Origin: Prasinococcaceae sp. CCMP 1430
Lineage: Eukaryota; Plantae; Prasinodermophyta
Direction: 5' to 3'
DNA: 64,000 nucleotides
Assembly (NCBI GenBank): GCA_013416795.1
Contig: RQSC01000011.1
Coordinates: 298,721-362,720 of the forward strand
Shown here: in pieces, positions 17,359-64,000 of the stretch
How positions within the stretch are numbered: position 1 is the stretch's first letter
Layout: every line of letters starts with the position of its first letter
The notes under the pieces: generated by a model
Databases searched by the model: none
The model's input: the letters and a program-made list of their open reading frames with translations, nothing else
What the model was told of the DNA's origin: nothing
Program-made: the position numbers and the translations under genes

Positions 17359-17947
17359 NNNNNNNNNNNNNNNNNNNNNNNNNNNNNNNNNNNNNNNNNN
17401 NNNNNNNNNNNNNNNNNNNNNNNNNNNNNNNNNNNNNNNNNNNNNNNNNNNNNNNNNNNNNNNNNNNNNNNNNNNNNNNNNNNNNNNNNNNNNNNNNNNN
17501 NNNNNNNNNNNNNNNNNNNNNNNNNNNNNNNNNNNNNNNNNNNNNNNNNNNNNNNNNNNNNNNNNNNNNNNNNNNNNNNNNNNNNNNNNNNNNNNNNNNN
17601 NNNNNNNNNNNNNNNNNNNNNNNNNNNNNNNNNNNNNNNNNNNNNNNNNNNNNNNNNNNNNNNNNNNNNNNNNNNNNNNNNNNNNNNNNNNNNNNNNNNN
17701 NNNNNNNNNNNNNNNNNNNNNNNNNNNNNNNNNNNNNNNNNNNNNNNNNNNNNNNNNNNNNNNNNNNNNNNNNNNNNNNNNNNNNNNNNNNNNNNNNNNN
17801 NNNNNNNNNNNNNNNNNNNNNNNNNNNNNNNNNNNNNNNNNNNNNNNNNNNNNNNNNNNNNNNNNNNNNNNNNNNNNNNNNNNNNNNNNNNNNNNNNNNN
17901 NNNNNNNNNNNNNNNNNNNNNNNNNNNNNNNNNNNNNNNNNNNNNNN
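17359..17947. other. Assembly gap (N run)
   Basis: Run of N in sequence. Confidence 1.
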
Positions 17948-25625: not shown

Positions 25626-25746
25626 NNNNNNNNNNNNNNNNNNNNNNNNNNNNNNNNNNNNNNNNNNNNNNNNNNNNNNNNNNNNNNNNNNNNNNNNNNN
25701 NNNNNNNNNNNNNNNNNNNNNNNNNNNNNNNNNNNNNNNNNNNNNN
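25626..25746. other. Assembly gap (N run)
   Basis: Run of N in sequence. Confidence 1.
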
Positions 25747-28292: not shown

Positions 28293-28470
28293 NNNNNNNN
28301 NNNNNNNNNNNNNNNNNNNNNNNNNNNNNNNNNNNNNNNNNNNNNNNNNNNNNNNNNNNNNNNNNNNNNNNNNNNNNNNNNNNNNNNNNNNNNNNNNNNN
28401 NNNNNNNNNNNNNNNNNNNNNNNNNNNNNNNNNNNNNNNNNNNNNNNNNNNNNNNNNNNNNNNNNNNNNN
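28293..28470. other. Assembly gap (N run) holding the divergent starts of the DnaJ-ZnF and SET genes
   Basis: Run of N in sequence. Confidence 1.
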
Positions 28471-30612: not shown

Positions 30613-32961
30613 TCACTTGGGCGTGCACACGTTCTTCTTGAATGCGCAGAGCTTCTTGGCGTCGCCCTGCTTGCACTCCTTCTTGTTCTTGGCGGCCTTG
30701 CAGAGCTTCTTGATGGCCTTTTTGGAGAGCTCGGACTGGTCGGTCTTCTTCGACTCCTTCTTCTTGTTCTTGTTCTTCTTCTTCTTGCCGGTGGGCTCGT
30801 CGCCCTCCTCGGGAGGAGGCGACGGGGTGCCGGAGAGCTTGTCGGACTTGCCGGCCTTCTTCTTGTTCTTCTTCTTGTCCTTGCCGGTGGGCGACGACGC
30901 GCCTGGCAGAGTGATGTCGAGGGCTGGCGCTGTTGCGTCGTCGAACAGGCCCTCCGCATCTTCGGCGGACTGGGCGGACGTCGAGGACTCGCCGCCCTCG
31001 AACGCGCCCGGCACGTCCGTCTGGCCGTGGTCGTCACGACCCCAGCAGTAGATCGCGCCGTCGTCCCGGGCGACGCCGCACGTGTGAGCCGCTCCGGCGC
31101 TCACGGACGCCCACGCGCCCACGCCGCTCGGCACGTCCAGCTGGCCGTCGGCGTTGTGCCCCCAGCAGTGCATCGAGCCGTCGTCCTGGGCGACGCCGCA
31201 CGTGTGCCAGTCTCCTGCGCTCACTGAGGACCACGCGCCCGCGCCGCTCGGCGCGTCCGCCTCGCCGGCGGCGTTGCTTCCCCAGCAGTGAATCGCGCCG
31301 TCGGCCTGCGCGACGCCGCACGTGTGAAAGTATCCTGCGCTCACCGAGGACCACGCGCCCACCTCGCTCGGCACGTCCGCCTGGCCGTAGGAGCTCCGTC
31401 CCCAGCAGTGCAGCGCGCCGTCGGCCAGCGCGACGCCGCACGTGTGGAAGGTTCCGGCGCTCACGGAGGACCACGCGCTCACAGTGCTGGGCACGTCGCT
31501 CTGGCCGAAGAGGTTCCACCCCCAGCAGCGGAGCGCGCCGTCGGCCCGCGCGACGCCGCACGTGTGGGCCCCTCCGGCGCTCACGGAGGACCACGCGCGG
31601 ACGGCGCTCGGCACGTCCGCCTGGCCCGCGTAGTTGGACCCCCAGCACTGGAGCGCGCCGTCGGCCCGCGCGACGCCGCACGTGTGGGAGAGTCCGGCGC
31701 TCACGGAGGACCACGCGTTGTCGCGCCCCGCATCGTGCGGCACGTGCACGTAGCCGTCGCCCGGGGTCGTCGCGTCGAGCGGCAGCCGCACGCGCTCCGG
31801 CGTGCACACGCTCGCGGGCCGCGAGTGCCTTCGCGACGAGTCGTCCACAGCGAGGGGCGGCGGAGATTGGGGGTTGTTGGGCGGCGGGCTCGATGGCGAG
31901 CTCGAAGGAAGGCTCGGCGGAGGCGGGCTCTCTGGCGGAGCATTAGCCGGGACGGGGCTGGGCGACGGGCTCGACGGCGGGCTGGCCGCCGGCGGAGGAC
32001 TCGTCGGGCTCGCCACGTCAGATGTGCTCGGCACGTCCGTCTGGCCATTTGTGTTTCTCCCCCAGCAGTAGATCGCGCCGTCGGCCACGCCGCACGTGTG
32101 GTGGATTCCGGCGCTCACGGTGGACCACGCGCCCACGCCGCTGGGCACGTCCGTCTGGCCATAGTCGTTGGTGCCCCAGCAGAGCAACGTGCCGTTGGCC
32201 TGCAAGATGCCGCATGTGTGCCACCCTCCGGCGCTCACGGTGGACCACGCGCCCGCGCCGCTCGGCACGTCGGTCTGGTTCCAGACGTCCTGTCCCCAGC
32301 AGCGCAGCGCGCCGTCCGCCAGCGCGATGCCGCACGTGTGGTAGTTTCCGGCGCTCACGGAGGACCAAGCGCTCACGTCGCTCGGCACGTCCGACTGGTT
32401 GTAGTAGCTGTTGGATCCCCAGCATTGCAGCGCGGAGTCCGCCTGCGCGATGCCGCACGTGTGGTCGTATCCGAGGCTCGCGGAGGACCACGCAGTCACG
32501 TCGCTCGGCATGGCGGTCTGGCCCGCGTAGCTCAATCCCCAGCAGTGGAGCGCGCCGTCCGCCCGCGCGATGCCGCACGTGTGAGTCGCTCCGGCGCTCA
32601 CGGAGGACCACGCGCTCACGTTGCTGGGCACGTCCATCTGGCTGTCGACGTCGCGCCCCCAGCAGTGCATAGCGCCGTCGTCCCGCGCGACGCCGCACGT
32701 GTGCGCGTCTCCTGCGCTCACCGAGGACCACGCGCTCACGTTGCTCGGCACGTCCACTAGCGCGCCGAGGTAGTCTTCGTCGTACATCATGGCATTTTCG
32801 GACGGTGCTTCGCCTCCCCAACAGCGCAGCTCGCCGTCGGCGAGCGAGAGGGCGCACGTGGCCCTGTATCCGGCGCTCAGGGAGTACGATTCGCGGTGCG
32901 AGTCGGGAGCGGCGGCCGCACCGCGCGGTGCGAGCAGCGCCACCGCCGCCCATGCCGCGCT
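30613..32961 (-). CDS. Secreted RCC1/BLIP-II-like repeat protein, copy A: two repeat blocks, Ser/Pro linker, Lys-rich 4-Cys tail; no in-frame ATG before the signal-like segment
   Basis: Repeated WSSVSAGxxHTCG...DG.L.CWG.N..GQ.DVP unit; hydrophobic N-terminus AWAAVALLAPRGAAAA; tail LCKAAKNKKECKQGDAKKLCAFKKNVC; in-frame TAG at 32962-32964. Confidence 0.85.
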   Translation of the reverse strand, partial: SAAWAAVALLAPRGAAAAPDSHRESYSLSAGYRATCALSLADGELRCWGGEAPSENAMMYDEDYLGALVDVPSNVSAWSSVSAGDAHTCGVARDDGAMHCWGRDVDSQMDVPSNVSAWSSVSAGATHTCGIARADGALHCWGLSYAGQTAMPSDVTAWSSASLGYDHTCGIAQADSALQCWGSNSYYNQSDVPSDVSAWSSVSAGNYHTCGIALADGALRCWGQDVWNQTDVPSGAGAWSTVSAGGWHTCGILQANGTLLCWGTNDYGQTDVPSGVGAWSTVSAGIHHTCGVADGAIYCWGRNTNGQTDVPSTSDVASPTSPPPAASPPSSPSPSPVPANAPPESPPPPSLPSSSPSSPPPNNPQSPPPLAVDDSSRRHSRPASVCTPERVRLPLDATTPGDGYVHVPHDAGRDNAWSSVSAGLSHTCGVARADGALQCWGSNYAGQADVPSAVRAWSSVSAGGAHTCGVARADGALRCWGWNLFGQSDVPSTVSAWSSVSAGTFHTCGVALADGALHCWGRSSYGQADVPSEVGAWSSVSAGYFHTCGVAQADGAIHCWGSNAAGEADAPSGAGAWSSVSAGDWHTCGVAQDDGSMHCWGHNADGQLDVPSGVGAWASVSAGAAHTCGVARDDGAIYCWGRDDHGQTDVPGAFEGGESSTSAQSAEDAEGLFDDATAPALDITLPGASSPTGKDKKKNKKKAGKSDKLSGTPSPPPEEGDEPTGKKKKNKNKKKESKKTDQSELSKKAIKKLCKAAKNKKECKQGDAKKLCAFKKNVCTPK
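31761..31830. other. Complemented-but-not-reversed block 1 (may extend to ~31839)
   Basis: Base-by-base complement equals 60775-60844 of paralog B at 70/70 positions (hand alignment); restores SVSAGRSHTCGLAHADGELRCWG in place of RHSRPASVCTPERVRLPLDATTP. Confidence 0.97.
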
Positions 32962-35302: not shown

Positions 35303-36181
35303 AGCCAAGACTATCGAGCCGGCACCGCTGGCCGCGTTGCTGACCGTCGCTGAGCGCCTCGACAAAACGTAGGCACTCCCCAGTTGAACTTCGCCCACGA
35401 GGACGGCGAGTTGCAAGGTGCGGTCACGCATCTTTGAGGGCGACAAGCTCAACAACCTTCGAGCCACCTGGGGTTCGAGCACGCAAATGTCAGACGCTGC
35501 ACGATTGCGACCACAGCAGATAGAGCTATCGACGTCGCATCGCCCACTCCTAGTTTCCTGCGCCCGCCATCCCAATGTGTATGAGACATGGCGTGTGTGG
35601 ATCCAGTCGCTCGCCCCGCCTGCTCCGCCCCGCGCGCGCGGGGTGGCGGGCACGCCGCCGGCGCCGTTCCCCGGCAGCCGCGTACCAGGACTGTACTGTG
35701 GTCCAGCTAGACTCTCGAGGCAGCCGGCCGACAGCGCCGGGTCGCCAGGGTTCTCTAGCTAGCTAGAGACTACTCCTACAGTCGTCGTACTGTAGAACGC
35801 AGCGTGACGCCGTGTCTGGCCGCACCAACGGGCGGTGAGACCGGGGATGACATCCTCTGACCGAGGCAGGAAGGCGGGGTCACCCGGGTGAGCGCGAAGG
35901 ACAGTACATGTACATACAGTAGTCACTAGTGCAGTACTAGTACTACTGTACTGTAACTGCCCTCGAGCTGTACGAGCGAGCGTGTGTGGGGTGAGGGGGG
36001 TGGGTGGGGGCGGTAGCAGGAGCCACTCGAGGGCGCCCCAGCAGGCGCCCACCGCCGCGCCGCCTTGACCCCTCCCTGTTTCCCACGCGCGTGCCCCCTG
36101 TGGTGGTGTGTGTTGGGGGGGGGGGGGAGTGCGGCGCGGCGTGGGCGCGCGCTTTGCCGCCGCGGCGTCCCGAAGGCGACG

Positions 36182-38318
36182 ATGTCCATCTGGGAGGGCG
36201 TGGCGCCGCGTGCCGGGCTGCGCGAGCCGCTGCTCGCGCCGTCCGACGCGCACCGCCGCGCTGCTGGCGCTCGGTGCGCGCGAGGCCGCCTGGGTGGGCG
36301 CCGGCGTCGCGGCCCTGCTTGTGAGGCTGCCCTTCTCGCTGTCGATGCCGCTGTGGACCGCGCGTGCCGTGGACGAGCTCTATGGCTCCGACGAAGCGCG
36401 TGACATGGCGGCGGTGCGGCGCACGCTGCTGTACATGGCCGCCGCGGGCACCATCGATGCCGCGCTCGACTTTTGGTGTGTGTTCCTCTTCGGCTATGCG
36501 CAGCAGCGCCTCGTGCGGCAGCTGCGGCTCGACACGATGGCGGCCATCCTGCGGCAGGAGGTGGCGTATTTCGACGCAACGACCAGCGGTGAGCTGCTGA
36601 GCCGGCTGACGGCGGACTGCGAGGCGATGGCGGGCGACCTCACCAACGTGCTGCGCTCGGTGGTGGAGGCCGTTGTGCGCATCGGCTGGATTGCCGCGTA
36701 CATGCTCTACTCGTCGCCGCGGTTGGGCGGGGTTGCGTGCTGCGTGGTGCCGCTCACCGCCGCAGTGACGCGCTGCTACGCGCGCTGGCTGCATGCCAAC
36801 GCCACGCGCGTGCAGGCGGCGCTCGCGCGCGCCAACGCCTCCGCTGCCGAGGCGCTCGCCGGCCTGCGGACGGTGCTCGCCTTCGCCGCGGAGCGCGCCG
36901 AGCTCGCGCGCTTCGGCGCGGCCGTCGAGGAGCACCACTGGCTCAACGTGCGTCAGCTGGTCATAACGGGCGCGTACTACGCCGTGGCCGCCACCCTGCT
37001 CTCTAACACCGCCGTGGCGGTGGCGCTGCTAGCATACGGCGCCGTGCTTGTCGCGGAAGGCTCCATCTCCCCCGCCACGCTGCTGGGATTCATGCTGTAC
37101 CAGGCGCAGCTGCAGGAGTATTGGAACAACCTTCTGAACGCGCTCACCGGCTTGGTGCGCTCGTCGGGCGCGGGCGCCAAGGTTTTCGAGCTGCTCGGTA
37201 GGCAGCCCAAGTGCGTGCGCCTCGACGGGGGCGGGCTCGGCGACGCGTGTGGTTGGCTCGGCGACGGACTACGCGACAACACGGCGCCGGGGCGGACTGG
37301 TGGAGGCGGACGCGTGGGTGCTGACGCCGATGCGAGCACGCGCGCCAAGGCACGGGCGCATTTGCTGGGCGTCGACGTGCGCGACGTGTCCTTCGCGTAC
37401 CCCACGCGGCCATCCGTGCGCGTGCTCGACGGCGTGGGCCTGCGCGCGGAGGCCGGCGAGACGGTGGCGCTGTGCGGGGCGAGCGGCAGCGGCAAGAGCA
37501 CGCTTTTTCACATGCTTCAGGGGTTCTACGAGCCCGACGCGGGAGGCGTGTTCCTCTTGGGCGATGTGGTTGGTGGCGAGGCCGCTGTGTGTGCCATCCC
37601 ACACCGTGCTCTGCATCGGCTGGTGGCGCTGGTTGGCCAGGAGCCGGTGCTCTTTTCCGGGTCCGTGGAGTATAACATCCTGTACGGCGCGCTCGCCGAC
37701 CTGGTGGCGGAGCGTGAAGTAGCCGACGTCGCGCGCCCGCGCATGCGCGCTCGCGAGCGCACGCGAGCGGGGCTCGCGGGGGCGTTTGGGCTGCGCGGGC
37801 GCGTAGGCGCGGACTCGGATGTGAGGGCGAGCGGCTGGGAGGACCTCGTCGGCTCGCCCGCGGCCCTGGTAGACCTGCGCGCGCGCGCGCGCGCCGCTGC
37901 GGCCCTCGCGAACGCCGCGGGCTTCATCGATGCGCTGCCCGAGGGCTACGCTACGCAGGTGGGCGAGGGTGGCGCGGCGCTGAGCGGCGGGCAGAAGCAA
38001 CGTGTGGCCATCGCGCGGGCGCTGCTCCGCGACCCGGCGCTGCTGCTGCTCGACGAGGCCACCAGCGCACTCGACTCGGAGAGCGAGGCGGCCGTGCAGG
38101 AGGCGCTCGAGTCCGCTGCCGCCGGCCGCACCACTATGGTCATCGCGCACCGCCTGTCGACCATCCGCCGCGCGGACGCCATCCACGTGCTGCGCGCGGG
38201 CCGCGTCGTGCAGAGCGGCACGCACGCCGCGCTTCGCGCCGACGCGCGCGGCGCGTACGCGGCGCTCGCGCACGCGCAGGAGCTGCGCGACGACGCGGGG
38301 ACAGATGAGGACTCGTGA
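36182..38318 (+). CDS. ABCB (TAP-like) half-transporter; likely start ATG 36182 is out of frame with the main ORF
   Basis: TMD followed by Walker A GASGSGKS, Q-loop VGQEP, LSGGQKQRVAIARAL, LLLDEATSALD, IAHRLST. Confidence 0.92.
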
Positions 38319-41680: not shown

Positions 41681-42748
41681 GGCACCGACCGCCGTCGCCC
41701 ACGCCCTTCCTCACAGCCCCCCTCCCTTTGCCTCCCTGCCCTTGTCCCCCACGCGGTGCGCTGGCGCCGCCGCCGCCGCTCGCCGCCGCCGCGGCGGCCG
41801 CCACACCAGGCCCGCCTCTCACCCCCCCACCCACTCTCCCACCGCCGCACGCAGCTGCTCGCGCGCAGCAACGCCCTTGGCCACTTCGCTCAGGGCTGGC
41901 AAGCGCCCCGGCGGCGGGCGCCCCGCGAAACGCGCGCGAATTCGGCCGAAAGCAAAAGAGCTGGAAAACCAAAACCAAAACCAAAACCACAACCACAGCC
42001 CCGGTTGGGACCTCCCGGATGTGTTGGGGCTGACTGCATTGTACCAGGTACACACTAATATTCTATTCCTAACCACAACCAAAAACCAACCAAAACCAAA
42101 ACTGGGAGTCCCGACCGACCGTTGGTGGCGGTGCCACCCCGACCTCGACCTCGGCACGCGTGCGCATCGTTGGCGGAGGTGCGGAGCGGAGCCCGGACCG
42201 AATGGAGCGTCGACGCGCGCGCGTGCCCCGCCCCCAATCCGACTGAGGGGCCTCGATCGGATCAAACCTCCCATCAACACGGCGGCGCCCGTCCGCCTCC
42301 AGCCCGGGCCGAACCGCAACGGATCCAACGAAACTCGCGGAATGAAACTTCATAAGTGTGCGAATCCATGCGGAACCCACACGCGGGGACTCTACCGACC
42401 GCGCGCCCGCCTTTTTTTTTTTTTTGAAATGGGGGAGGGGAGGAAAGAATGCAGGCGACGAGAGGCCATGATCTCAGCCCTTTGTAAAAGGATCTAAATC
42501 AAAAATTTGAATTTTTCGCGCGCGTGGCTGAGAGCGGGGTGCATGGGCGGGCGAGGCGCGGCGGGAGGGGACGCCACACCTCGCGCTCGGGGCGGGCGGA
42601 CGGGAGGGGGGGGGGGACCAGGTGGGTTGAGGAGGGCGAGGAGGAGGGGAGGAGAGAGCTGGTCGGAGGGCTGCGCGCCGGTGCGCGCCGCTGCGCGCCG
42701 CTGCGCGCCGCTGCGCCGGGATGGCGCTACGGCGCGGGCGATGACGCC

Positions 42749-45700
42749 ATGGACGTGGACGCCGACGCCGGCGCCGAAAGCGACGCGGGCGCCAGCCTCG
42801 CCTCGCCCGAGTCCCTGGCGCGCGCGCTGCGCGCCATCACCACGCGCCACGGCAAGCTGCTCTCGACGCGCAGCGAGGCCGTGCGCGCGGCGGCCGCGCT
42901 TTGCGGCGACGTGCTCGCGTGCGAGCGGTCGCCGGCGCAGGCCGTGGAAGACGCATGCGAGGCGCTGCGTGCGCTCTGTGTTGGCGGTGGCTTCGTCACC
43001 GTGGCGCTCGCCGCGTGCGTGCTCAAGGAGCTGCTGCCATGCCTGCTCTACGGCGCTCCGCCCGCGGCCGCGAGCGTCAACCGCTCGCAGCCCACCATGA
43101 GCCGCGCCCAGAAGGCGTGCCGCGCCGCGGCGCTCGAGGTGGCGTTGTGTGTTGCCGACTCGACCACCAGCGCGGCGGCGGCGGCGCTCTCTCGCCAGCT
43201 CTGCCTTCGCGCCCCCGAGCGCGCCGACCTGCACAACCTGGCCATCGAGGCCGCGCGCGACCTCGTGCACACGCTGCCGCTCGCGGAGCGCCATCGCATG
43301 GGCCGCTTCCTCGCCAAGCTCAGCAAGAACGGCAAGCCCGTGCGCCGCCAAGTCGCGGTCGAGCTCGCTGGCGAGCTGCTCGCCACCATGCCTGGTGCGC
43401 AGGACGAGATCCCGGCGGGCATGGAAATGGAGATCGTAACCCCCGGCTCCGTCGCCGGCACGCCGGGCTCAGTGTACGGCGGCACCCCCTCGGGCACGCC
43501 CGGTGGCGGTGGCGCGCGCTCGCCCTTCCCGGTCACACCCGGCGCTGCTGTTGGCACGCCGTACGCTTCCACACCAGCCAGTGCGACCGCCGGCACGCCG
43601 CAGCCGACCCCAGGCGCGTTTGGCCAGAGCGCCCCCCTCTCGTGGGGTGCGTCCTGCGCTGGCGTGGTGGTGGCGCGCGCGAGCGACCGCATGCCCGCCG
43701 TGCGTGCCAAGGCTTTGGCAGCGCTGGCGGTCGCACTGCGCGCACTCACCGCCGAGGGCTTCCACGGCCTCGTGGCGCGCGCAGCGAGCGCGTCGCCCGG
43801 AAGCACGCTCCTTACCACCGGTGCGCACACCGATGCACTTCTGGGCTTTACGGCCCCCACAGATGCTGGCACGAAGGCCACCGCGTCGACGCCGGTTGGA
43901 CCGACGCCCATGGACGACACCGCGGGCAGGGAGGGCATCAACGCCGCTGCGCGTGCGTCCGCACGCGCAATGGCGCCCCTGCTCTACCGCCGCGTGACGG
44001 ACGTCAAGCCTGCGGTGCGCAAGGCAGCGCTAGCCGCGCTCGAGTCCCTCTGCACGTCCGCTGGCCACGCCACCCGCGAGGATATTGCAGCACTGTCCGC
44101 GTGCTGCTCCGACAGCCTCGTGAGCGTGCGACGGCAGGCTGCGGCGTCTCTCGGTGCGATGTGCGCGTGCCTGCCGAATGACCCCGCGCTTGCCCGTGCG
44201 GTCGCAGAGACGGTGCTTCCCCTCGCCGCGGACCCGGAGGCGCAGGTCGCAGACAAGGCCGCGGACGTCTGCGAGCAGGTCTTCCTCGCGCCCCTCGTGA
44301 CCGGCGACGCATCAGCCGCCGAGGAGGTCGCGAGCACGCTGGGTGCGCTTGCAGATGCGCCGAGCGCGATGGCGGCCTTGCCCCGCGCTCTTGGCGCGCT
44401 GCACGCCCGCAAGGCGGTGAAACCCGCGCATGTACGCGCGCTGCAGGCCTGCTGCGCCAAGGGCACGCGCACGAGCGCGCGCGCGGGAGCGCTGGCACTC
44501 CTCGCGCAGCTCGCGGACTGCGCGCCGGGCGCAGTGTCGGCGGAATTCATCACCGCGCAGTGGAAGAGTCTGGACGCGTCCTCTTCCGTCGAGGAGGACT
44601 CCTCCATGGCCGACGTGCTTCGCATCATTGCCAAATGTGGCGCCTCTGCGCTGAGTGCCGATGCGGGCGGACAGATGACTGCGACGCTGGCGGGTCGCCT
44701 GGCCGCGTGCGCCGCGTCGCCCGCGACCGTATCGGCGATGATGGGCGCTGCCATCGCCTTGGGCGGCACGCGCGTCCTGCCGCCACTCATGGAGTCTGCT
44801 GCCAAGCGCGTTGTGCGCGCGGTGACTGCCGGCGATCTCGGCACCGGCTTCGAGTCAGGCGTGCAGGACAGCGCGCAGAGCGCGACTCTCGTTGCTGCGC
44901 TGTTCATGCTCGGCGAGTCAGCGCTCATCTTGGAGCGCGAAGCGCCCGCCGAGGCCGTCACTATGACTCAGGCGCTGCTGGGCGCGTACCTTGAACGCTC
45001 CGGCGACGCCAGCAGCGTGCGCGTGCCCTCTGTTGTGCGCGCGCACGCGTGGTGTGCCCTGGGCAAGATGTGCGTCGCGTACGAGCCGCTCGCCAAGAAG
45101 TGTGCGGTGCTTTTCGTCGCCGAAGCCGAGTCCGGGGCCGAGGCCGCAAGCCGCAACAACGCGCTCGTGGCGCTGTCCGACCTCTGCGTGCGCTACACTG
45201 CGGTCGTCGACGGGCGCATGGAGAGGCTGGCGTCATGCCTGCGCGATCCCTGTGAGCTGGTGCGCCGCCAGGCGATGCTCCTGCTCGCGTCGCTGCTGCA
45301 GCGCGACTACCTGAAGTGGCGCGGCGCGGTCTTCCACCGCTTCTGCCTGGCTCTTGTGGACGAGAGCCCTGCCATCCGCGACCTCGCCACGCACCTACTG
45401 GGGAGCACACTTGCAGCTAAGGTGCCCATGCTCGCGCACAATCACTTCGTGGAGGCCTTCTTTGTGCTCAACGCGTGCACGATCGGTCCTGGCGCGGGCG
45501 CTGCCGTTCCTGAGGGCGCCAAGGCCCGCTCCCTGTTCTGCCTCGAGGGGACGCACATGCGCTCTCGCCGTCTGGCCGTCTACCGCCGCCTGCTTGCCAC
45601 CATGACGCCCGAGCAGCGCTTCGCCTCTACTGCCCGCCTCTGCAGCGAAGTGCTCGGCTGCGTCGCGGACGGCGGCCTGCCGGTGAACGAGTGCGAAGAA

Positions 45701-46666
45701 GTCATCGCAGACGTCCTCAGCGTGCTTGCCAGCAAAGAGGCGCAGACTGGCGGCGCGCTGTCGACGAGCGCCGGCGCATCGGAGCCTGAGAATGCCATGG
45801 AGGCCGTTGCGGCCGCCAAGGGCCGTGTGGTGTCGCAGCTCATGCGCAAGAATACGCTCGAGAATGTGGTGCCCGTGCTTGTCGAGCTGCGTGCGCTGCT
45901 GCAGCGGCTGCGCTCGCCGCTGCAGGGGCACATGCTGGGCTGCGCGTGCGACGTCCTGCGCCCGCACCGCAACGAGCTGCGCGACGCGCTGGCGGCGGAC
46001 CCGCTCTTTGCCGCGGAGGTGGCCGACGAGATGCGACGCAGAGATGCGACGCGCGCCGCTGGCATGCAGGCGCAGCAGCAGCAGCCGAGCGCGCAGAGCG
46101 CACAGCAGCCCGCGCCGCAGCAGCCTGCCGAGCAGGCTGCGGCCGCGCCTGCGAATCGGACTCCCGCGACGGCCAAGACCGTGCGCATCGCCACCGAGGC
46201 GACGCCGAACGCCGATGCAAATGCCTCGCCCATGTACGCTGCCACGGGGACCCCAGGCGCGGGCCTCTCGGGCGGCACCGCCACGCTGCGGGCGCTCGCA
46301 TCGGCCGGCACCCCGCGACACTCGGAGATGTCGGTGCCGCGGTTGCGCACAACGCGCGCGCGTACGCGCGCAGGCGCCGCTGCCGCGCTTGCGAGCGGCT
46401 CGCCGTCACCCGGTGGCGCGCGACGCGTGTCAGGCGTGGCCTTCGACGGTAGCGAGGGCGCGCAAGCGCGCGCAGCGGCGACCGTGTGCGCCATCCGCAC
46501 GCCGGGCTCGGCTGCCGCTGGTCAGGAGCCCCGCGAGCGTTGGAATGTCACACTGGCCGCGCCAACCACAGACGCGAACGCCGACGCCGAGGACCTCGCT
46601 GCAGATGCAGACGCTGCTGCTGCTGAGGAGCCCAAGGCTGGCATGAAGCGCGCGCGTGGCGAGTGA
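42749..46666 (+). CDS. NCAPD3: Condensin II HEAT subunit CAP-D3
   Basis: Cnd1 domain RNNALVALSDLCVRYTAVVD...LRDPCELVRRQ...LLQRDYLKWRG; the DY.KWRG form is CAP-D3-type. Confidence 0.88.
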   Translation: MDVDADAGAESDAGASLASPESLARALRAITTRHGKLLSTRSEAVRAAAALCGDVLACERSPAQAVEDACEALRALCVGGGFVTVALAACVLKELLPCLLYGAPPAAASVNRSQPTMSRAQKACRAAALEVALCVADSTTSAAAAALSRQLCLRAPERADLHNLAIEAARDLVHTLPLAERHRMGRFLAKLSKNGKPVRRQVAVELAGELLATMPGAQDEIPAGMEMEIVTPGSVAGTPGSVYGGTPSGTPGGGGARSPFPVTPGAAVGTPYASTPASATAGTPQPTPGAFGQSAPLSWGASCAGVVVARASDRMPAVRAKALAALAVALRALTAEGFHGLVARAASASPGSTLLTTGAHTDALLGFTAPTDAGTKATASTPVGPTPMDDTAGREGINAAARASARAMAPLLYRRVTDVKPAVRKAALAALESLCTSAGHATREDIAALSACCSDSLVSVRRQAAASLGAMCACLPNDPALARAVAETVLPLAADPEAQVADKAADVCEQVFLAPLVTGDASAAEEVASTLGALADAPSAMAALPRALGALHARKAVKPAHVRALQACCAKGTRTSARAGALALLAQLADCAPGAVSAEFITAQWKSLDASSSVEEDSSMADVLRIIAKCGASALSADAGGQMTATLAGRLAACAASPATVSAMMGAAIALGGTRVLPPLMESAAKRVVRAVTAGDLGTGFESGVQDSAQSATLVAALFMLGESALILEREAPAEAVTMTQALLGAYLERSGDASSVRVPSVVRAHAWCALGKMCVAYEPLAKKCAVLFVAEAESGAEAASRNNALVALSDLCVRYTAVVDGRMERLASCLRDPCELVRRQAMLLLASLLQRDYLKWRGAVFHRFCLALVDESPAIRDLATHLLGSTLAAKVPMLAHNHFVEAFFVLNACTIGPGAGAAVPEGAKARSLFCLEGTHMRSRRLAVYRRLLATMTPEQRFASTARLCSEVLGCVADGGLPVNECEEVIADVLSVLASKEAQTGGALSTSAGASEPENAMEAVAAAKGRVVSQLMRKNTLENVVPVLVELRALLQRLRSPLQGHMLGCACDVLRPHRNELRDALAADPLFAAEVADEMRRRDATRAAGMQAQQQQPSAQSAQQPAPQQPAEQAAAAPANRTPATAKTVRIATEATPNADANASPMYAATGTPGAGLSGGTATLRALASAGTPRHSEMSVPRLRTTRARTRAGAAAALASGSPSPGGARRVSGVAFDGSEGAQARAAATVCAIRTPGSAAAGQEPRERWNVTLAAPTTDANADAEDLAADADAAAAEEPKAGMKRARGE

Positions 46667-46886
46667 CGAGAGGAGACGGGCCATCGCTGCGCGTGGGCGT
46701 GCTGTTGCCGCGCGCAGTATTAGGGCGAGTATATACACATTTTGTGCTCCACGCGCGTCGGGGTGCACATCGGCGCAGGTGCGCGCGTGTGCCACGCGTG
46801 CGATGCGAGTTTACAAAATTCAGCCCTCGCGCCCGTTGAGTGTGTGTGTGTCTGTGTGTATTGGTTTGCTCCAGCGCACGCGACGC

Positions 46887-48122
46887 CTACGCCTGCGCGT
46901 CGATCTCCTTGAGCAGCGCCTCTCCCATGGCGTTGCAGCCGACCTGCGTCATGCCCTCCGACATCAGGTCCCCCGTGCGCAGGCCCTTGTCCAGCACGGC
47001 GTTCACGGCATCCTCTATCCTCTGCGCGGCCGCCGGCTCGTCGAGCGCGTAGCGGAGCATCATGGCAGCGCTAAGCACCATCGCCAGCGGGTTCGCCTTA
47101 TCCTCGCCCGCAATGTCCGGGGCCGAGCCATGCACGGGCTCGAAGACGCCGGGCCACTGCGATGGCGAGCGCCCGCGAGAACGGCGCCAGTGGATGCGTC
47201 AGTGGCCAAGTCGCTGACGTGTACATTCGCGCGCGCGTGCGCATGGAAGCACGCGCGCGAGCGCGCGCGCGAGCGTTCATGCGCCGCAGCTCACCTTGTC
47301 GCCAATGGAGGCGCTGGGAAGCATGCCGATGGAGCCGGTGAGCATGGAGGCACAGTCCGACAGAATGTCGCCGAAGATGTTGCCCGTGAGCATCGTGTCG
47401 AACTGCGTGGGAGCGCGCACCAGCTGCATGGCGGCATTGTCCACGTACATGTGCGAGAGCGACACGTCGGAGAACTCCTTGCCGACCTCGTCAACGCGCG
47501 CGCGCCACAGCTGCGAGACCTCCAGCACGTTGGACTTGTCCACCGAGACGAGCTCGCCGCCGCGCTTGCGCGCGAGATCGAAGGCCACGCGCGCGATGCG
47601 GTCCACCTCGGGCTCGGAGTAGATCATGGTGTTGAAGCCCGTGCGATCGCCGGCGTCGTTCTCCCCGAAGCCGCGCGGCTCACCGAAGTAGATGCCGCCC
47701 ACGAGCTCGCGCACGACCATGATGTCGGTGCCGCGCACGATGTCCTCCTTGAGGCTCGACGACGACACCAGCTGCGGCAGCACCACCGCGGGACGCAGGT
47801 TGGCGAAGGCGTCAAGGCCCGCGCGCAGCTTGAGCAGCCCGCGCTCGGGGCGCATCTCGGGAGGGTTGCTGTCCCACTTGTACCCGCCGATGGCCGACAG
47901 CAGCACCGCGTCACCCGCGCGGCACTTCTCGAGCGTCTCGTCGGGGCACGGCGAGCCCGCGGCGTCGATAGCGGCGCCACCGAGGTGCGCCTCGTCGAAG
48001 CTGAAGGAGATGTCCTCCTCCTTGCGCTCCACCGCCTTGAGCACGTCGAGCGCCACGCGCGTGATCTCCGGCCCGATGCCGTCGCCCGGCAGCACGGTGA
48101 TCTTGTGCGTGCGCGCGGCCAT
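46887..48122 (-). CDS. leuB: 3-isopropylmalate dehydrogenase (intron 47294-47157); transit peptide probably extends upstream of 48122
   Basis: [62 protein letters not shown]. Confidence 0.97.
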
Positions 48123-49724
48123 CGCCGCCGCCGCGCGGCGCGGCGCCAGGGGGGCGGGGAGCGGGGGAAGGGAGAAGGTGGGTGCGCTCGCGCGAGTGCG
48201 GCGTGTGCCGCCACCGCGCCGCCACCCGCGCCCACGAGCCGGCGGCTGGGAGGGTTTGATCTCGGATAAGGCTCCAATTTCATCGATGCGAACACAACAA
48301 GAGGAGGTCAAATCACACATGGAAAAACGCTTCGAGACACATTTCAATATCGTCTTTGAAACCTCGAGGTTCACCGCCTGCACGGCGGTACGCTATTGAG
48401 TACACAGACCCTCTTCCCAAACGTGTACATATATGTATACCCTAAAACCAAACCTTAACTACCGGCGGGCGGCGGCCCGCTTTTGATCCGGCGCGTCGCG
48501 CGCGAGGGCGGCCGGAGATCTGCCCGAGGGAGATGCGGGCGGGATCTCGAACGGGGGCCGCCGCCAACCCAATACAACAACAACGGACGGACGCAGCCAA
48601 CGCCTCATCAACAACACGTGCACCCGCGCTCATCATCATCACAAGCCACACCTACTACTTCTGTGTGTACCTGCACGCGGTAACGGACGGCGGACGGCCG
48701 CGTGGTGGGAGTGTGCTGGCCCTCCCGCCCGCCGAGCGACCCGCCAGGCGGACCCACACCTGGATACGATCGACGAGTTCGTCGTCGCACGCGCGAAGCC
48801 AGCGAGCGAAGCTCGCGAGAGCCCGGCGCCCACGCTGCTGGGCGCAGGCACAGGCAGGGCCTGCTCCTCCGCTGCTGCTGCGACGCGCCCAGGCAGCCAG
48901 CAGGTCAAACCACACGCGTCGATCGATCGGGCGGCGGGGCGGAGAGACAGACAGACAGGCGCATCAGACGCGCGACGCCAGCCGGGTGAGCGTGTGCCAT
49001 GCAAGTGCTGTCTGTACGTCGCTGTCAGGGAGAACCGTGGACGGCGAGTGCGGAGCTTCCCCAGCGGACCGACCGAGCCTTCGATCCGATCCGTCCGTCG
49101 ACGCCGCACCGCATCGACGGCGCGCGTTTCATCGAAAGCCTGGAGGAGATGCGGAGACGTTGACTTCCGGTCACCGAACCCTAACCTGAGCGGACTGCTG
49201 GAGTCGATTTGAATATGTATAAATGCACTCATCAACAAACCCTTGAACCCTAAACAGGGCCGCGATCTGGGATCTCCCTGCGTTTTTTTTTTTTGCGCGT
49301 TTTTTTTTTTTGCGCGGGCGAAGGCAGAATCTCCGCCCGGCCGCGCGGCGGGCGCGTCCGACTTTTCGGAGATGGTCGTGCGCGAAGAATTTGTTCATAA
49401 GGTGTGCATAATTCGCGGAATGGCGCATGGAATTGGGGGCAATTATGCGAAACTCACGCAGGCGCGCGTGCGCGCAGCGGGCGCCACAGCGCGCGCGCGG
49501 GGCGCGGCTGGGGGGGGGCGTGTGTGTGGCTGCGCCCGCCGCCATGACGCGCCACGCGCGGCTCGAACGCGAGCGGCAAAGCGGCGCGCAGTGGCGGTGA
49601 TCCGCGGCGCGGCGCTGCGCCGCCGCCAGCCGCGGCCGCCGTTGCACCCCTCGCACAGCAGTCCGGCGCCAATGCAAAGGTTGAGGCGCCGGCGCCGGCG
49701 GAGGCGCAGAAGCGGGAGGAGGAG

Positions 49725-55911: not shown

Positions 55912-57487
<1,576 letters not shown>

Positions 57488-58825: not shown

Positions 58826-58969
58826 TCACTTGGGCGCGCACGCGTTCTTCTTGAACGTGCAGAGCGTCTTGGCGTCGCCCTGCTTGCACTCCTTCTTGTT
58901 CTTGGCGGCCTTGCACAGCTTCCTGACGGCCTTTTTGGAGAGCTCGGACTCGTCGGTCTTCTTCGACTT
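58826..58969 (-). pseudogene. Orphan third copy of the Lys-rich 4-Cys tail of the RCC1-repeat genes
   Basis: KSKKTDESELSKKAVRKLCKAAKNKKECKQGDAKTLCTFKKNACAPK* with no RCC1 repeats upstream. Confidence 0.75.
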
Positions 58970-59599
58970 AGGCCGAGCGTTGCGTTCGCGGCACGAGGGC
59001 GCGCTCCGGCCGCGCGCGCGCGAGCGAGGATCTCGGAACGTTCCCTTCCTTCCTTCTTTCCTTCCCTGGCTCGTCGCACCTCGCGCGATCCGCTCCGCCC
59101 GGACCGCGCGCGGGGAGGGGCCGGACCGCGCGCGCGGAGAGTGAACTGGTTGCGAACCACCGACCGAAGGGGGGAATCGCAGAAACGGGCGAGCGCGTCC
59201 AGGCCACCGCGCGGAAACCGCGGACCCTGGAAACGACCCACCGACGGGGGACTCGGCGCAGACGTATGGCCCCCGTCTGGCTGGCTGGACCGCGAAGCCC
59301 GGTCACAGTGGCGTCGTCAAGTTAAGGTCTGGACGATGAGAGGGTTTACGTACTGTATGCGACGGCGCGACGGCGACGGCCAATGCACAGCCTGCGCTTC
59401 GGCAGCGCGGAGCGGCGACTCGCTCTGCGCCCTTGGGCGCCTCTCCTCGCGCGCATCCTCGCGGTTTTACGAGGCAGGCGCGGGAGACTATGACTATAGC
59501 AGAGTGGAGGCGATTCGAGTGTGATGAGTTGTCAGCGCCAGTGCGCGCTCGAGCGAGGCGTGGGTGTCGACCGCCTTTCGGCGGCGTCTCCCCCCACGT

Positions 59600-62161
59600 T
59601 CACCTGGGCCTGCACGCGTTGTTCTTGAATGTGCAGAGCTTCTTGGCGTCGCCCTGCTTGCACTCCTTCTTGTTCCTGGCGGCCTTGCACAGCTTCTTGA
59701 TGGCCTTTGTGGAGAGCTCGGACTCGTCGGTCTTCTTCGACTTCTCCTTCTTCTTGTTCTTCTTCTTCTTGCCGGTGGGCTCCTCGTCCTCTTCGGGAGG
59801 AGGCGACGGCGAGCCGGAGGGCTTGGACTTGCCGGCCAAGAAGAACAAGAAGAAGAACGAGAAAAAGAACAGGAACGGCCCGGGCGACGACGCGCCTGGC
59901 AGAGTGATGTCGAGGGCCGGCGCTGTTGCGTCGTCGAACAGGCCATCCGCATCTTCGGCGGACTGGGCGGACGTCGAGGACTCGCTGCCCTCGAACCGCG
60001 GGCCGTGCAGGCAGACCGGCACCAGCAGTGCTGGGGTCGTCTAGATCGCGCCGTCCTCCCGGGCGACGCCGCACGTGTGAGCCGCTCCGGCGCTCACGGA
60101 GGACCACGCACCCGCGCCGCTCGGCACGTCCGTCTGGCCGTCGGCGTCGCGCCCCCAACAGCGCATCGCGCCGTCGTCCCGGCTGACGCCGCACGTGTGC
60201 CAGTCCCCTGCGCTCACCGAGGACCACGCGCCCGCGCCGCTCGGCGCGTCCGCCTGGCCGTCGTCGTTGGACCCCCAGCAGTGAATCGCGCCGTCGGCCT
60301 GCGCGACGCCGCACGTGTGAAAGTATCCTGCGCTCACCGAGGACCACGCGCCCACGCCGCTCGGCACCTCCGTCTTGCCAAAGCCGCTGCGTCCCCAGCA
60401 GTGCAGCGCGCCGTCGGCCAGCGCGACGCCGCAGGTGTGGAAGGTTCCGGCGCTCACGGAGGACCAAGAGGACCACGCGCTCACAGTGCTGGGCACGTCG
60501 CTCTGGCCGAAGAGATTCCACCCCCAGCAGCGGAGCGCGCCGTCGGCCCGCGCGACGCCGCACGTGTGGGCCCCTCCGGCGCTCACGGAGGACCACGCGC
60601 GGACGGCGCTCGGCACGTCCGCCTGGCCCGCGTAGTTGGACCCCCAGCACTGGAGCGCGCCGTCGGCCCGCGCGACGCCGCACGTGTGGGAGAGTCCGGC
60701 GCTCACGGAGGACCAGGTGTTGTCGCGCCCCGCATCGTGCGGCACGTGAACGTAGCCGTCGTGGCCCCAGCAGAGGCCCCAGCAGCGCAGCTCGCCGTCG
60801 GCGTGCGCGAGGCCGCACGTGTGCGAGCGCCCGGCGCTCACGGAGTGCGGTGTGGCATCCACAACGAGGGGCGGCGGAGAGTTCGGGTTGTTGGGCGGCG
60901 GGTTTTGAAGAGGCGGGCTCGACGGAGGCGGGCTCGACGGAGGCGGGCTCGACGGCGGCGGGCTCGACGGAGGCGGGCTCGACGGCGGCGGGCTCGACGG
61001 CGGGCTGGCCGCCGGCGGAGGACTCGTCGGCGGGCTCGGCGGCAGCCAGCTCGGCACGTCCGTCTGGCCGTATTCGCCGTCGCCCCAGCAGTAAATCGCG
61101 CCGTCGTCCCGGGAGACGCCGCACGTGAAGTACGACCCGACGCTCACGGAGGACCACGCGCTCACGTTGCTCGGCACGTCCGTCTGGCCGTTGCCATTGA
61201 GTCCCCAGCAGAGCAGCGCGCCGTCGGCCTGCGCGATGCCGCACGTGTGCCATTCCCTGGTGCTTACCGAGGACCACGCACTCACAACGACCGGCACGTC
61301 CGTCTGGCCCTCGCCGTTAGATCCCCAGCAGTGCAGCGCGCCGTCGTCCAGCGCGATGCCGCACGTGTGGTACATTCCGGCGCTCACGGACGACCACGCG
61401 CTCACGTCACTCGGCACGTCCGCCTGGCCGTAGTCGTCGTAGTCAGAGGGGGATCCCCAGCAGCGCATCGCGCCGTCAGCCTGCGCGATGCCGCAGGTGT
61501 GGTACATTCCGGTGCTCACGGACGACCACGCGCCCACGCCGCTCGGCACGTCCGTCTGCCCGTCGGTGTTCGATCCCAAGCAGTGCAGCGCGCCGTCGGC
61601 CTGCGCGATGCCGCACGAGTGGAACAGAGATGGGCTCACGGAGGACCACGCGCCCACGCCGCTCGGCACGACCCCTTCGCCGTACATGTTATACCTCCAG
61701 CAGTACAGCGCAGAGTCCGCCCGCGCGATGCCGCACGTGGCGTAGGCGCCGGCGCTGACGGAGGACCACGCGCTCACATTGCTCGGCATCGGAATGTGCT
61801 CGTACTCGGAGACGTAGTAGTAGGTGGAGTCGGACGGTTCAATTTCTGGCCAGCAGCGCAACTCCCCGTCGGCGTGCGCGAGGCCACACGCGTGGAACGA
61901 TCCGACGCTCACGGAGTACGGCGGCTCTGAGTCCGAGTCCGAGGCGGCGGTTAGCTCTGAGTCCGAGTCCGAGGCGGCGGTTAGCTCTGAGCCCGAGTCC
62001 GAGGCGGCGGTTAGCTCTGAGTCCGAGTCCGAGGCGGCGGTTAGCTCTGAGTCCGAGTCCGAGGCGGCGGCGGCGCCGTTGAGGCCCGGTGCGAGCGCCG
62101 CCGCGCATGTCGCGAGGAGCAGCAGCTTGTTGGTTGTTGCGAGGGGGGGTGGAGGGGGCAT
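59600..62161 (-). CDS. Secreted RCC1/BLIP-II-like repeat protein, copy B; premature TAG at 60041-60043 is produced by complemented block 2
   Basis: MPPPPPLATTNKLLLLATCAAALA signal; SD repeats; RCC1-like units; SPPP linker; tail 59600-60022 is in the same frame as the main ORF. Confidence 0.88.
59997..60041. other. Complemented-but-not-reversed block 2
   Basis: Base-by-base complement of 31004-31048 in copy A at 45/45 positions, with matching colinear flanks; restores YCWGRDDHGQTDVPGA. Confidence 0.97.
61925..62070 (-). repeat. 30-nt tandem repeat (about 5 units) encoding ASDSDSELTA
   Basis: GAGTCCGAGTCCGAGGCGGCGGTTAGCTCT repeated on the + strand. Confidence 0.92.
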
Positions 62162-62564
62162 GTTTTTGTTTCGCAGGACGCGACGAGGCCCTGGTCGGTT
62201 GGGCGGAGGATGAGGCGTGAGAGGGGGGGGAGGGCGGAGTGGGAAGGCGGTCAGGGGCAGCTCGACCGTGCAAGCTCTACGAGCGGCAGCGCTGCCTGAA
62301 ACCGAGCAGGCCGTAGGCGGCCTTGTACGATATGAATGCGGACACACACTAGCAAAAGCCAGCAAAAACATGTACACGAAAACTGATGTCACACTTGCCT
62401 CGAGCACATAGCCAGACCATGCGCGGCCGGCGCACCGCCCGCGACCCGCCTGCTGTAGGCGGCGAGGCGGGGGGAGGGACTCGCTGGCTCATCGCGAGCG
62501 CCACACGCGCTCTCGGTCGCGCCCTCGCGGCCGGGACGCGCGCGCGCACAGGGGCGGGGGGGCG

Positions 62565-62840: not shown

Positions 62841-62841
62841 N

Positions 62842-64000
62842 GGCGGGCTCGGAGGCGGGCTCGAGGGGGTCAGATCAAAGACGTACGCGCTGCCGCTATC
62901 GTCGCCGCCGTCGTTGTCCTCCCTATCAGCGCCCACCAGCGCGTAGTAGCCCGAGAGCGCCACGCTGACGCCGAAGTAGTCATCCGCCGCGGCGTCGCTT
63001 GCCACCAGCTTGGCGTGCTGCGACCACGACGTCCCCGACCGCAGGAAGACGTACGCGCTGCCGCTGTCGTCGCCGCCGACGGCGTCGTAAGGAACGCCCA
63101 CCAGCGCGTAGTCGCCCGAGAGTGCCACGCTTGTGCCGAAGTTGTCATACTCCGCGCCGTCGCTGGCCAACAGCTTGGCCTGCTGCGACCACGAGGTCCC
63201 CGACCGCACGAAGACGTACGCGCTGCCGCTGGCGGAGCCGTCAAAAGGGGCGCCAACCAGCGCGTAGTCGCTAGAGAGCGCCACGCTGGTGCCGAACTCG
63301 TCATTCGCCGCGCCATCGCTGGCCACCAGCTTGGCCTGCTGCAACCACGACGTCCCATTGCGAACGAACACGTACGCGCTGCCGCTGTTGGAGCCACTGT
63401 CGTCGTCGTGGGGAGCGCCCACCAGCGCGTAGTCGCCCGAGAGCGCCACGCTGACGCCAAAGCGGTCGTCGTACGTGCCGTCGTCGGCCATAAGCTTGGC
63501 CTGCTGCGACCACGACGTCCCCGAACGCACGAACACGTACGCGCTGACAGGGTTGCCGTCGTTCCACCAAGCGCCAACCAGCGCGTAGTCGCCCGAGAGC
63601 GCCACGCTGGCGCCGAAGTTGTCAGATCGGCGCCGCAGCGACCGTTGGTCGAACCGGACGACGCTGGTGCTGCAGGGGCTGGGCACGAACACGTACGCGC
63701 TGCCGCTCTCGTCGCCGCCGTCGTCGTCATATAGAGCGCCCACCAGCGCGTGGTCGCCCGAGAGCGCCACGCTCCAGCCGAAGGCGTCACCCGCCGCGGC
63801 GTCGCTGGCCACCAGCTTGGCCTGCTGGGACCACGACGTCCCATTGCGCACGAACACGTACGCGCTGCCGCTGTAGGGGCCGCCGTCCTCGTCTGAATAA
63901 GCGCCCACCAGCGCGTAGTCGCCCGAGAGCGCCACGCTGGTGCCAAAGTAGTCAGCGTCCGTGGCGTCGTTGGCCACCAGCTTGAACTGGTTCGGCGGTC
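62842..64000 (-). CDS. FG-GAP repeat (7-blade propeller-like) extracellular protein, partial at both ends
   Basis: Seven KL.A.D....D.FG.SVALSGDYALVGA...GSAYVF units, then SSPPPSP up to the N; frame is open to the window end. Confidence 0.9.
63627..63682. other. Complemented-but-not-reversed block 3
   Basis: PSPCSTSVVRFDQRSLRRR replaces the repeat consensus; its complement reads RSGTSWSQQAKLVASDAAA and nearly matches the neighbouring repeat at ~62987-63040. Confidence 0.95.

Follow-up and report, generated by a model that had tools for sequence, protein, structure and literature searches.

Errors made at repeats by assemblers, polishers and gap closers are short and local, are confined to the repeats and yield false peptides and pseudogenes. 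The known local assembly errors are wrong-copy consensus, indels and collapsed repeats. Small inversions and template-switch mutations at quasi-palindromes also replace a short segment with sharp edges and without change of length, and they leave the reverse complement of that segment. Indeed, templated DNA synthesis, replication, repair, recombination, inversion, gene conversion and template switching are all antiparallel and give a reverse complement. Decoding errors of SOLiD colour-space sequencing swap bases in place, again without length change, and can produce any of three base swaps; with two-base encoding, one and the same colour string stands for a sequence and for its complement. Finally, mirror repeats and H-DNA motifs, which involve reversed polarity on paper, are same-strand reversals and usually homopurine.

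Here we analyse four blocks found in a 64-kb stretch of DNA, called the window below, in which the expected sequence is replaced, base for base and without reversal, by its complement. As with the repeat errors of assemblers, polishers and gap closers, the blocks are short, local and repeat-confined and give false peptides and pseudogenes, and the same window has other local mismatches to independent contigs (57227-57320 and 36246). Unlike the known local assembly errors, they are complement-only. They share the length-preserving, sharp-edged character of small inversions and template-switch mutations but match only as the non-reversed complement. They share with SOLiD errors the in-place base swap, but show just one of the three swaps. 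As for mirror repeats, a reverse-only control detected none in the repeat genes. A literature search by literal phrase found no description of a complement-without-reversal artefact or bug.

Complement-only blocks in the window

The window, here assigned to the green alga Prasinoderma coloniale, is eukaryotic nuclear DNA, dense in genes and with 69% GC. Its genes include KRR1, Mo25, condensin Cnd1, a CLC channel, a cap-binding protein with an RRM domain and IPMDH. Blocks were detected by a k-mer scan and by BLAST of the complemented window against the window itself. The whole-window scan gave four complement-only blocks (Table 1), and all of the 58 same-direction complement-only BLAST HSPs came from them. 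At chance level, as estimated from 20 Markov-5 simulations, the longest complement-only match that is not of low complexity measures 18-23 nt.

Table 1. Coordinates of the blocks, of the genes that carry them and of the undetermined bases in the window
Feature	Coordinates	Strand	Description
RCC1-like gene A	30613..32943	(-)	776-aa ORF; paralog of gene B, ~83% identical
Block 1	31761..31830	(-)	70 nt, in RCC1-like gene A; complement 100% identical (70/70) to gene B 60775-60844
RCC1-like gene B	59603..62407	(-)	single ORF to 59603 only with blocks 2 and 4 complemented back
Block 4	59838..59880	(-)	43 nt, in the lysine-rich tail of gene B; complement matches the paralog, with an indel in the paralog
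Block 2	59997..60041	(-)	45 nt, in RCC1-like gene B; complement 100% identical (45/45) to gene A 31004-31048
FG-GAP_2 repeat (beta-propeller-type) gene	62739..>64000	(-)	7 visible units of 49-56 aa; continues past the window end; single N at 62841
Block 3	63628..63682	(-)	55 nt, non-reversed complement in unit 3 of the FG-GAP array; apparently false peptide PSPCSTSVVRFDQRSLRRR
Four sized N runs (121-589 nt)	455-604, 17359-17947, 25626-25746, 28293-28470		
Three single Ns	6092, 8683, 62841		

Several controls were performed. The reverse-only comparison gave 0 HSPs, with none in the repeat genes, so that the blocks could not be classed as mirror repeats. Two other base-swap maps (A<->C with G<->T, and A<->G with C<->T) gave 0 and 0 HSPs in the window. 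Reverse-complement (inverted) patches or HSPs were likewise absent within the repeat genes. When each block was compared with its own reverse, identity was 0.33-0.35, which is the chance level and shows that the blocks are not mirror-symmetric. In the window as a whole, the only reverse-only match of at least 30 nt is a low-complexity intergenic sequence at 49280-49316 (T12-GCGCG-T12-GCGCG).

Detection from composition was also tried. A strand-symmetric k-mer likelihood and codon log-odds were powerless, as the known blocks had z values of -0.9 to -1.7 in the k-mer score and were absent from the 25 windows with the lowest codon scores. Because such detectors have no power, hidden blocks in unique DNA are neither shown nor excluded by composition. 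The strongest outlier of the k-mer asymmetry scan was an unusually AT-rich intergenic region at 35730-35980, in which CTAG, GTAC and ACTAG words abound (TCTAGCTAGCTAGAG and ACTAGTGCAGTACTAGTACTACTGTAC among others).

The first-pass annotation of this DNA had counted three blocks of 45-80 nt, without length change and all in tandem-repeat coding regions. The window holds four, since block 4 was not in that count. Block 4 lies in a lysine-rich tail and not in a tandem repeat. With its 43 nt, block 4 also breaks a rule that had been considered, namely that block lengths are multiples of 5 (70/45/55). On the other hand, all the blocks are in register and length-preserving, as had been described. 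The same transformation is shared by two RCC1-like paralogs and by the FG-GAP gene, and its recurrence in an unrelated gene, which had also been put forward, is thereby confirmed.

Effects of the blocks on the FG-GAP and RCC1-like genes

The ORF carrying block 3 matches FG-GAP_2 (Pfam PF14312) over seven stretches with E=1.6e-129 and 422 bits; homologs of its product, 44-63% identical, number in the thousands. The pattern V/L-R-(S/N)-G-T-S-W-(S/L)-Q-(Q/H)-A-K-L-...-D-x-F-G is found in six of the seven visible units. The exception is unit 3, which as written is VPSPCSTSVVRFDQRSLRRRSDNFG where the sibling units have VRSGTSWSQQAKLVASDAAA.D.FG. Compared with the six sibling units, block 3 is identical at 1-3 of its 55 positions as written and at 45-52 of them, in register, after in-place complementing. 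At a per-site chance match of 0.29, the probability of a match as good as the best one (at least 52/55) is about 1e-24. Complementing in place turns the peptide PSPCSTSVVRFDQRSLRRR into RSGTSWSQQAKLVASDAAA, and peptide identity to the siblings rises from 2-4/19 to 14-18/19. In agreement, a profile HMM of the sibling units gave unit 3 a score of 41.7 bits as written and of 88.8 bits with the block complemented. The reading frame and the length are unchanged by the block; what it breaks is one propeller-blade junction.

These values bear out the earlier proposal that the in-place complement completes a regular 7-repeat array. The peptides then given were also right, and the coordinates (63627-63682) were right within one base, the block being 55 nt long. 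Base 63627 can be assigned neither to the block nor to its flank, and the left edge could be at this base.

Back-complementing, performed for analysis only, restores the consensus at all four blocks. In the RCC1-like genes, block 1 turns the peptide SVSAGRSHTCGLAHADGELRCWG into RRHSRPASVCTPERVRLPLDATTP. Block 4 turns a K/N-rich stretch into GPFLFFFSFFFLFFL (also given as FLFFFSFFFLFFL). The edges of block 2 are sharp: its flanks match the paralog at 58/60 and 59/60 positions in the normal sense, and only the 45 nt between them are complemented. This block makes a stop codon that ends the gene B ORF at 60041, with a loss of 146 residues from an otherwise intact gene. Altogether, the four blocks in 64 kb alter three genes, with three false peptides of ~14-24 residues and one false premature stop. 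Within the window, spurious peptides, which had been anticipated, are thus present together with the false stop.

The C-terminal tail of genes A and B, rich in lysine and containing cysteine, has a third copy (…KKECKQGDAKTLCTFKKNACAPK) on the minus strand at 58829-59302. This ORF has no ATG start, and every independent contig stops at its repeat. The copy may represent the remnant of a gene or else a terminal exon.

Repeats, independent contigs and other local discrepancies

Once back-complemented, each block overlaps an exact repeat of at least 31 nt common to a paralog or to a sibling unit. The restored blocks are 94-100% identical to their paralogs, which shows that no divergence has accumulated since the event. 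Block 1 corresponds, at both ends and to the nucleotide, to the maximal exact repeat between genes A and B (31761-31830 and 60775-60844); the other three blocks only overlap their repeats. This coincidence may reflect a mishandled repeat node, or chance.

Contigs of the same species from Tara Oceans and Logan are 96-99.6% identical to the window. One Logan contig, from run SRR29950796, matches it at 1568/1569 positions and must therefore come from the same strain; Illumina resequencing of CCMP1413 has been described (PMC11884799). Independent contigs at 95% identity or more covered 10,876 nt of unique window DNA, and no complement-only patch was found in them. At the density observed in the repeat genes (4 per 6.4 kb), 6.8 blocks would be expected in 10.9 kb, and the probability of finding none is ~0.001. 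Their distribution is thus uneven, with a concentration in repeat-rich genes. Part of the link between blocks and repeats is ascertainment, blocks being detectable here only where a paralog exists. The first-pass annotation had predicted more undetected blocks genome-wide; judging from the 10.9 kb of block-free unique sequence, the evidence at hand points to a restriction of the blocks to repeat-rich genes.

Among Logan, ENA and JGI contigs, none crossed any of the blocks. This is explained by the affected genes being full of exact repeats of at least 31 nt, at which k=31 and metagenome assemblies break. Contigs reached through the IPMDH, ankyrin and ABC transporter matches indeed stop at a repeat boundary, 400-550 nt before gene B is reached. 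Homology searches with 370 aa of the FG-GAP protein, with the 776 aa of gene A and with 167 aa around block 3 returned only relatives of at most 63% identity; the length ranges covered contained no copy from the same species, and longer full-length copies would escape these queries. Scans of metagenomes for the exact flanks of block 3 with a free gap over the block, and for relatives of the tail of genes A and B, found nothing. Exact look-ups of 30 sequences, of which 23 were window ORFs, gave three matches, namely IPMDH, the ankyrin protein and the ABC transporter. Two of the three match EukProt entries exactly, and one clusters at 90% with entries from Prasinoderma coloniale. Block-shaped proteins, such as a gene B product ending at the block 2 stop, were absent from the protein collection when queried with guessed gene models.

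The comparison with independent contigs also brought out local discrepancies of other kinds. At 57227-57320, the window has 94 nt where all environmental contigs have ~28 nt of GC-rich sequence. In the KRR1 frame, this segment encodes 33 residues resembling the N-terminus of an SNO/PdxT glutamine amidotransferase (Pfam PF01174, E=0.0013). At this site the same-strain Logan contig L014 breaks off, with bases of the environmental type (GGG, not GCT). The segment is possibly a chimeric local mis-assembly. Two Tara contigs (L015 and L016) have, near 36246, very GC-rich coding sequence of 107 nt that is missing from the window, and this loss frameshifts the N-terminus of the ABC transporter. The public EukProt model of the ABC transporter (657 aa) matches the window exactly and begins with the first Met past the break; the environmental protein has 747 aa.

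Two environmental contigs, L001 and L002, are 99.5-99.6% identical to the window over 42730-48147. To the left of 42730, both diverge from the window at the same base and continue the condensin ORF. There the window (42461-42729) is AT-rich and G-rich, looks non-coding and has no AG splice acceptor. On the right side (48148-48392), the similarity of both contigs to the window ends near 48147. Elsewhere in the window, the divergent sequence of these contigs is absent in every orientation. The first 34 nt of L002 (L002:1-34) are a fold-back, that is the reverse complement, of its own adjoining sequence, and look like a contig-end artefact of the environmental assembly.

As for the undetermined bases, coding phase is kept across the N run at 28293-28470; this run could be a well-sized gap or a mask that preserved the length.

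Origin of the blocks

At each block, the transformation is one that no template can produce; it is in register and without change of length, and the flanking sequence is in the normal sense. Since templated processes give the reverse complement and the blocks are the non-reversed complement, a biological origin is disfavoured. We conclude that the blocks are very probably an in-silico corruption of the sequence record and no part of the DNA of the alga.

The cause is most likely assembly-stage software, acting during assembly, polishing or gap filling. A short stretch would have been derived or handled on the opposite strand, for example as a locally rebuilt minus-strand segment. It would then have been put back into the plus strand reversed but not complemented or, equivalently, complemented and not reversed. 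The outcome would be an in-register, length-preserving, sharp-edged block, with at least four such events in the 64-kb window. The step at fault could be a local re-derivation where reads are ambiguous, as in repeat resolution, short-read polishing or gap filling. That all the events lie in genes with exact repeats of at least 31 nt points to such a step. The first-pass annotation had blamed a short-read gap filler with an orientation bug. Its non-biological in-place complement is retained here; the gap filler is one instance of the software that could be involved, and a polisher or a repeat-resolution step fits equally. N runs and single Ns do occur in the window, with distances of 787-3291 nt between a block and the nearest N. 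The published genome of Prasinoderma coloniale CCMP1413, with 69.8% GC, was assembled by NextDenovo from PacBio reads, Arrow and NextPolish being used for polishing; no gap filler is reported (PMC7455551).

Alternatively, the blocks could have arisen after assembly, through hand editing, file conversion or some deliberate or accidental alteration of this copy, the public record being clean. In favour of this explanation, the sized N runs and single Ns are at odds with the published PacBio/NextDenovo assembly (PMC7455551), and the protein collection is devoid of any block-shaped protein. However, the negative protein look-ups are weak evidence because they rest on guessed gene models. In addition, random hits should strike unique DNA as often as repeats, whereas the 10.9 kb of covered unique DNA is without a block. 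Moreover, the window and the public annotation share an oddity, since the EukProt ABC transporter model starts just after the 107-nt deletion and frameshift. We therefore regard an alteration after assembly as unlikely.

Sequencing in colour space offers a known route to a sharp-edged complement without reversal and with unchanged length, because two matching colour errors leave a base-swapped block in place. Such errors, however, predict all three base-swap maps, and the HSP counts were 58/0/0 for the complement and the two other maps, on which ground a colour-space decoding error was rejected. Furthermore, no colour-space data are reported for the CCMP1413 genome (PMC7455551). This origin is accordingly highly improbable.

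Repeat-rich genes favour recombination and template switching, and the 70 nt of block 1 are exactly those of a perfect paralogous repeat, but it is scarcely credible that a small inversion, template switching or gene conversion between repeats created the blocks as genuine DNA, given that such processes yield the reverse complement, that the matches to paralogs are same-direction complement only, that blocks without mirror symmetry cannot be mimicked by an inversion, and that a conserved propeller blade is broken and a stop codon introduced with no later divergence. Just as implausible is that they are real in the chromosomes of the alga through parallel-polarity template copying within repeat arrays by some new process.

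Taken as an artefact of the record, the blocks have no biological significance in themselves. Their value is a data-quality warning for the repeat-rich genes of this alga, and possibly for the pipeline too. A paralog-based complement-only scan is a cheap screen for such blocks. If the public record carries them, the same software may also have affected other assemblies. The genome of Prasinoderma coloniale defines the phylum Prasinodermophyta and, on the same condition, its repeat-rich genes may hold spurious lineage-specific peptides and pseudogenes genome-wide.
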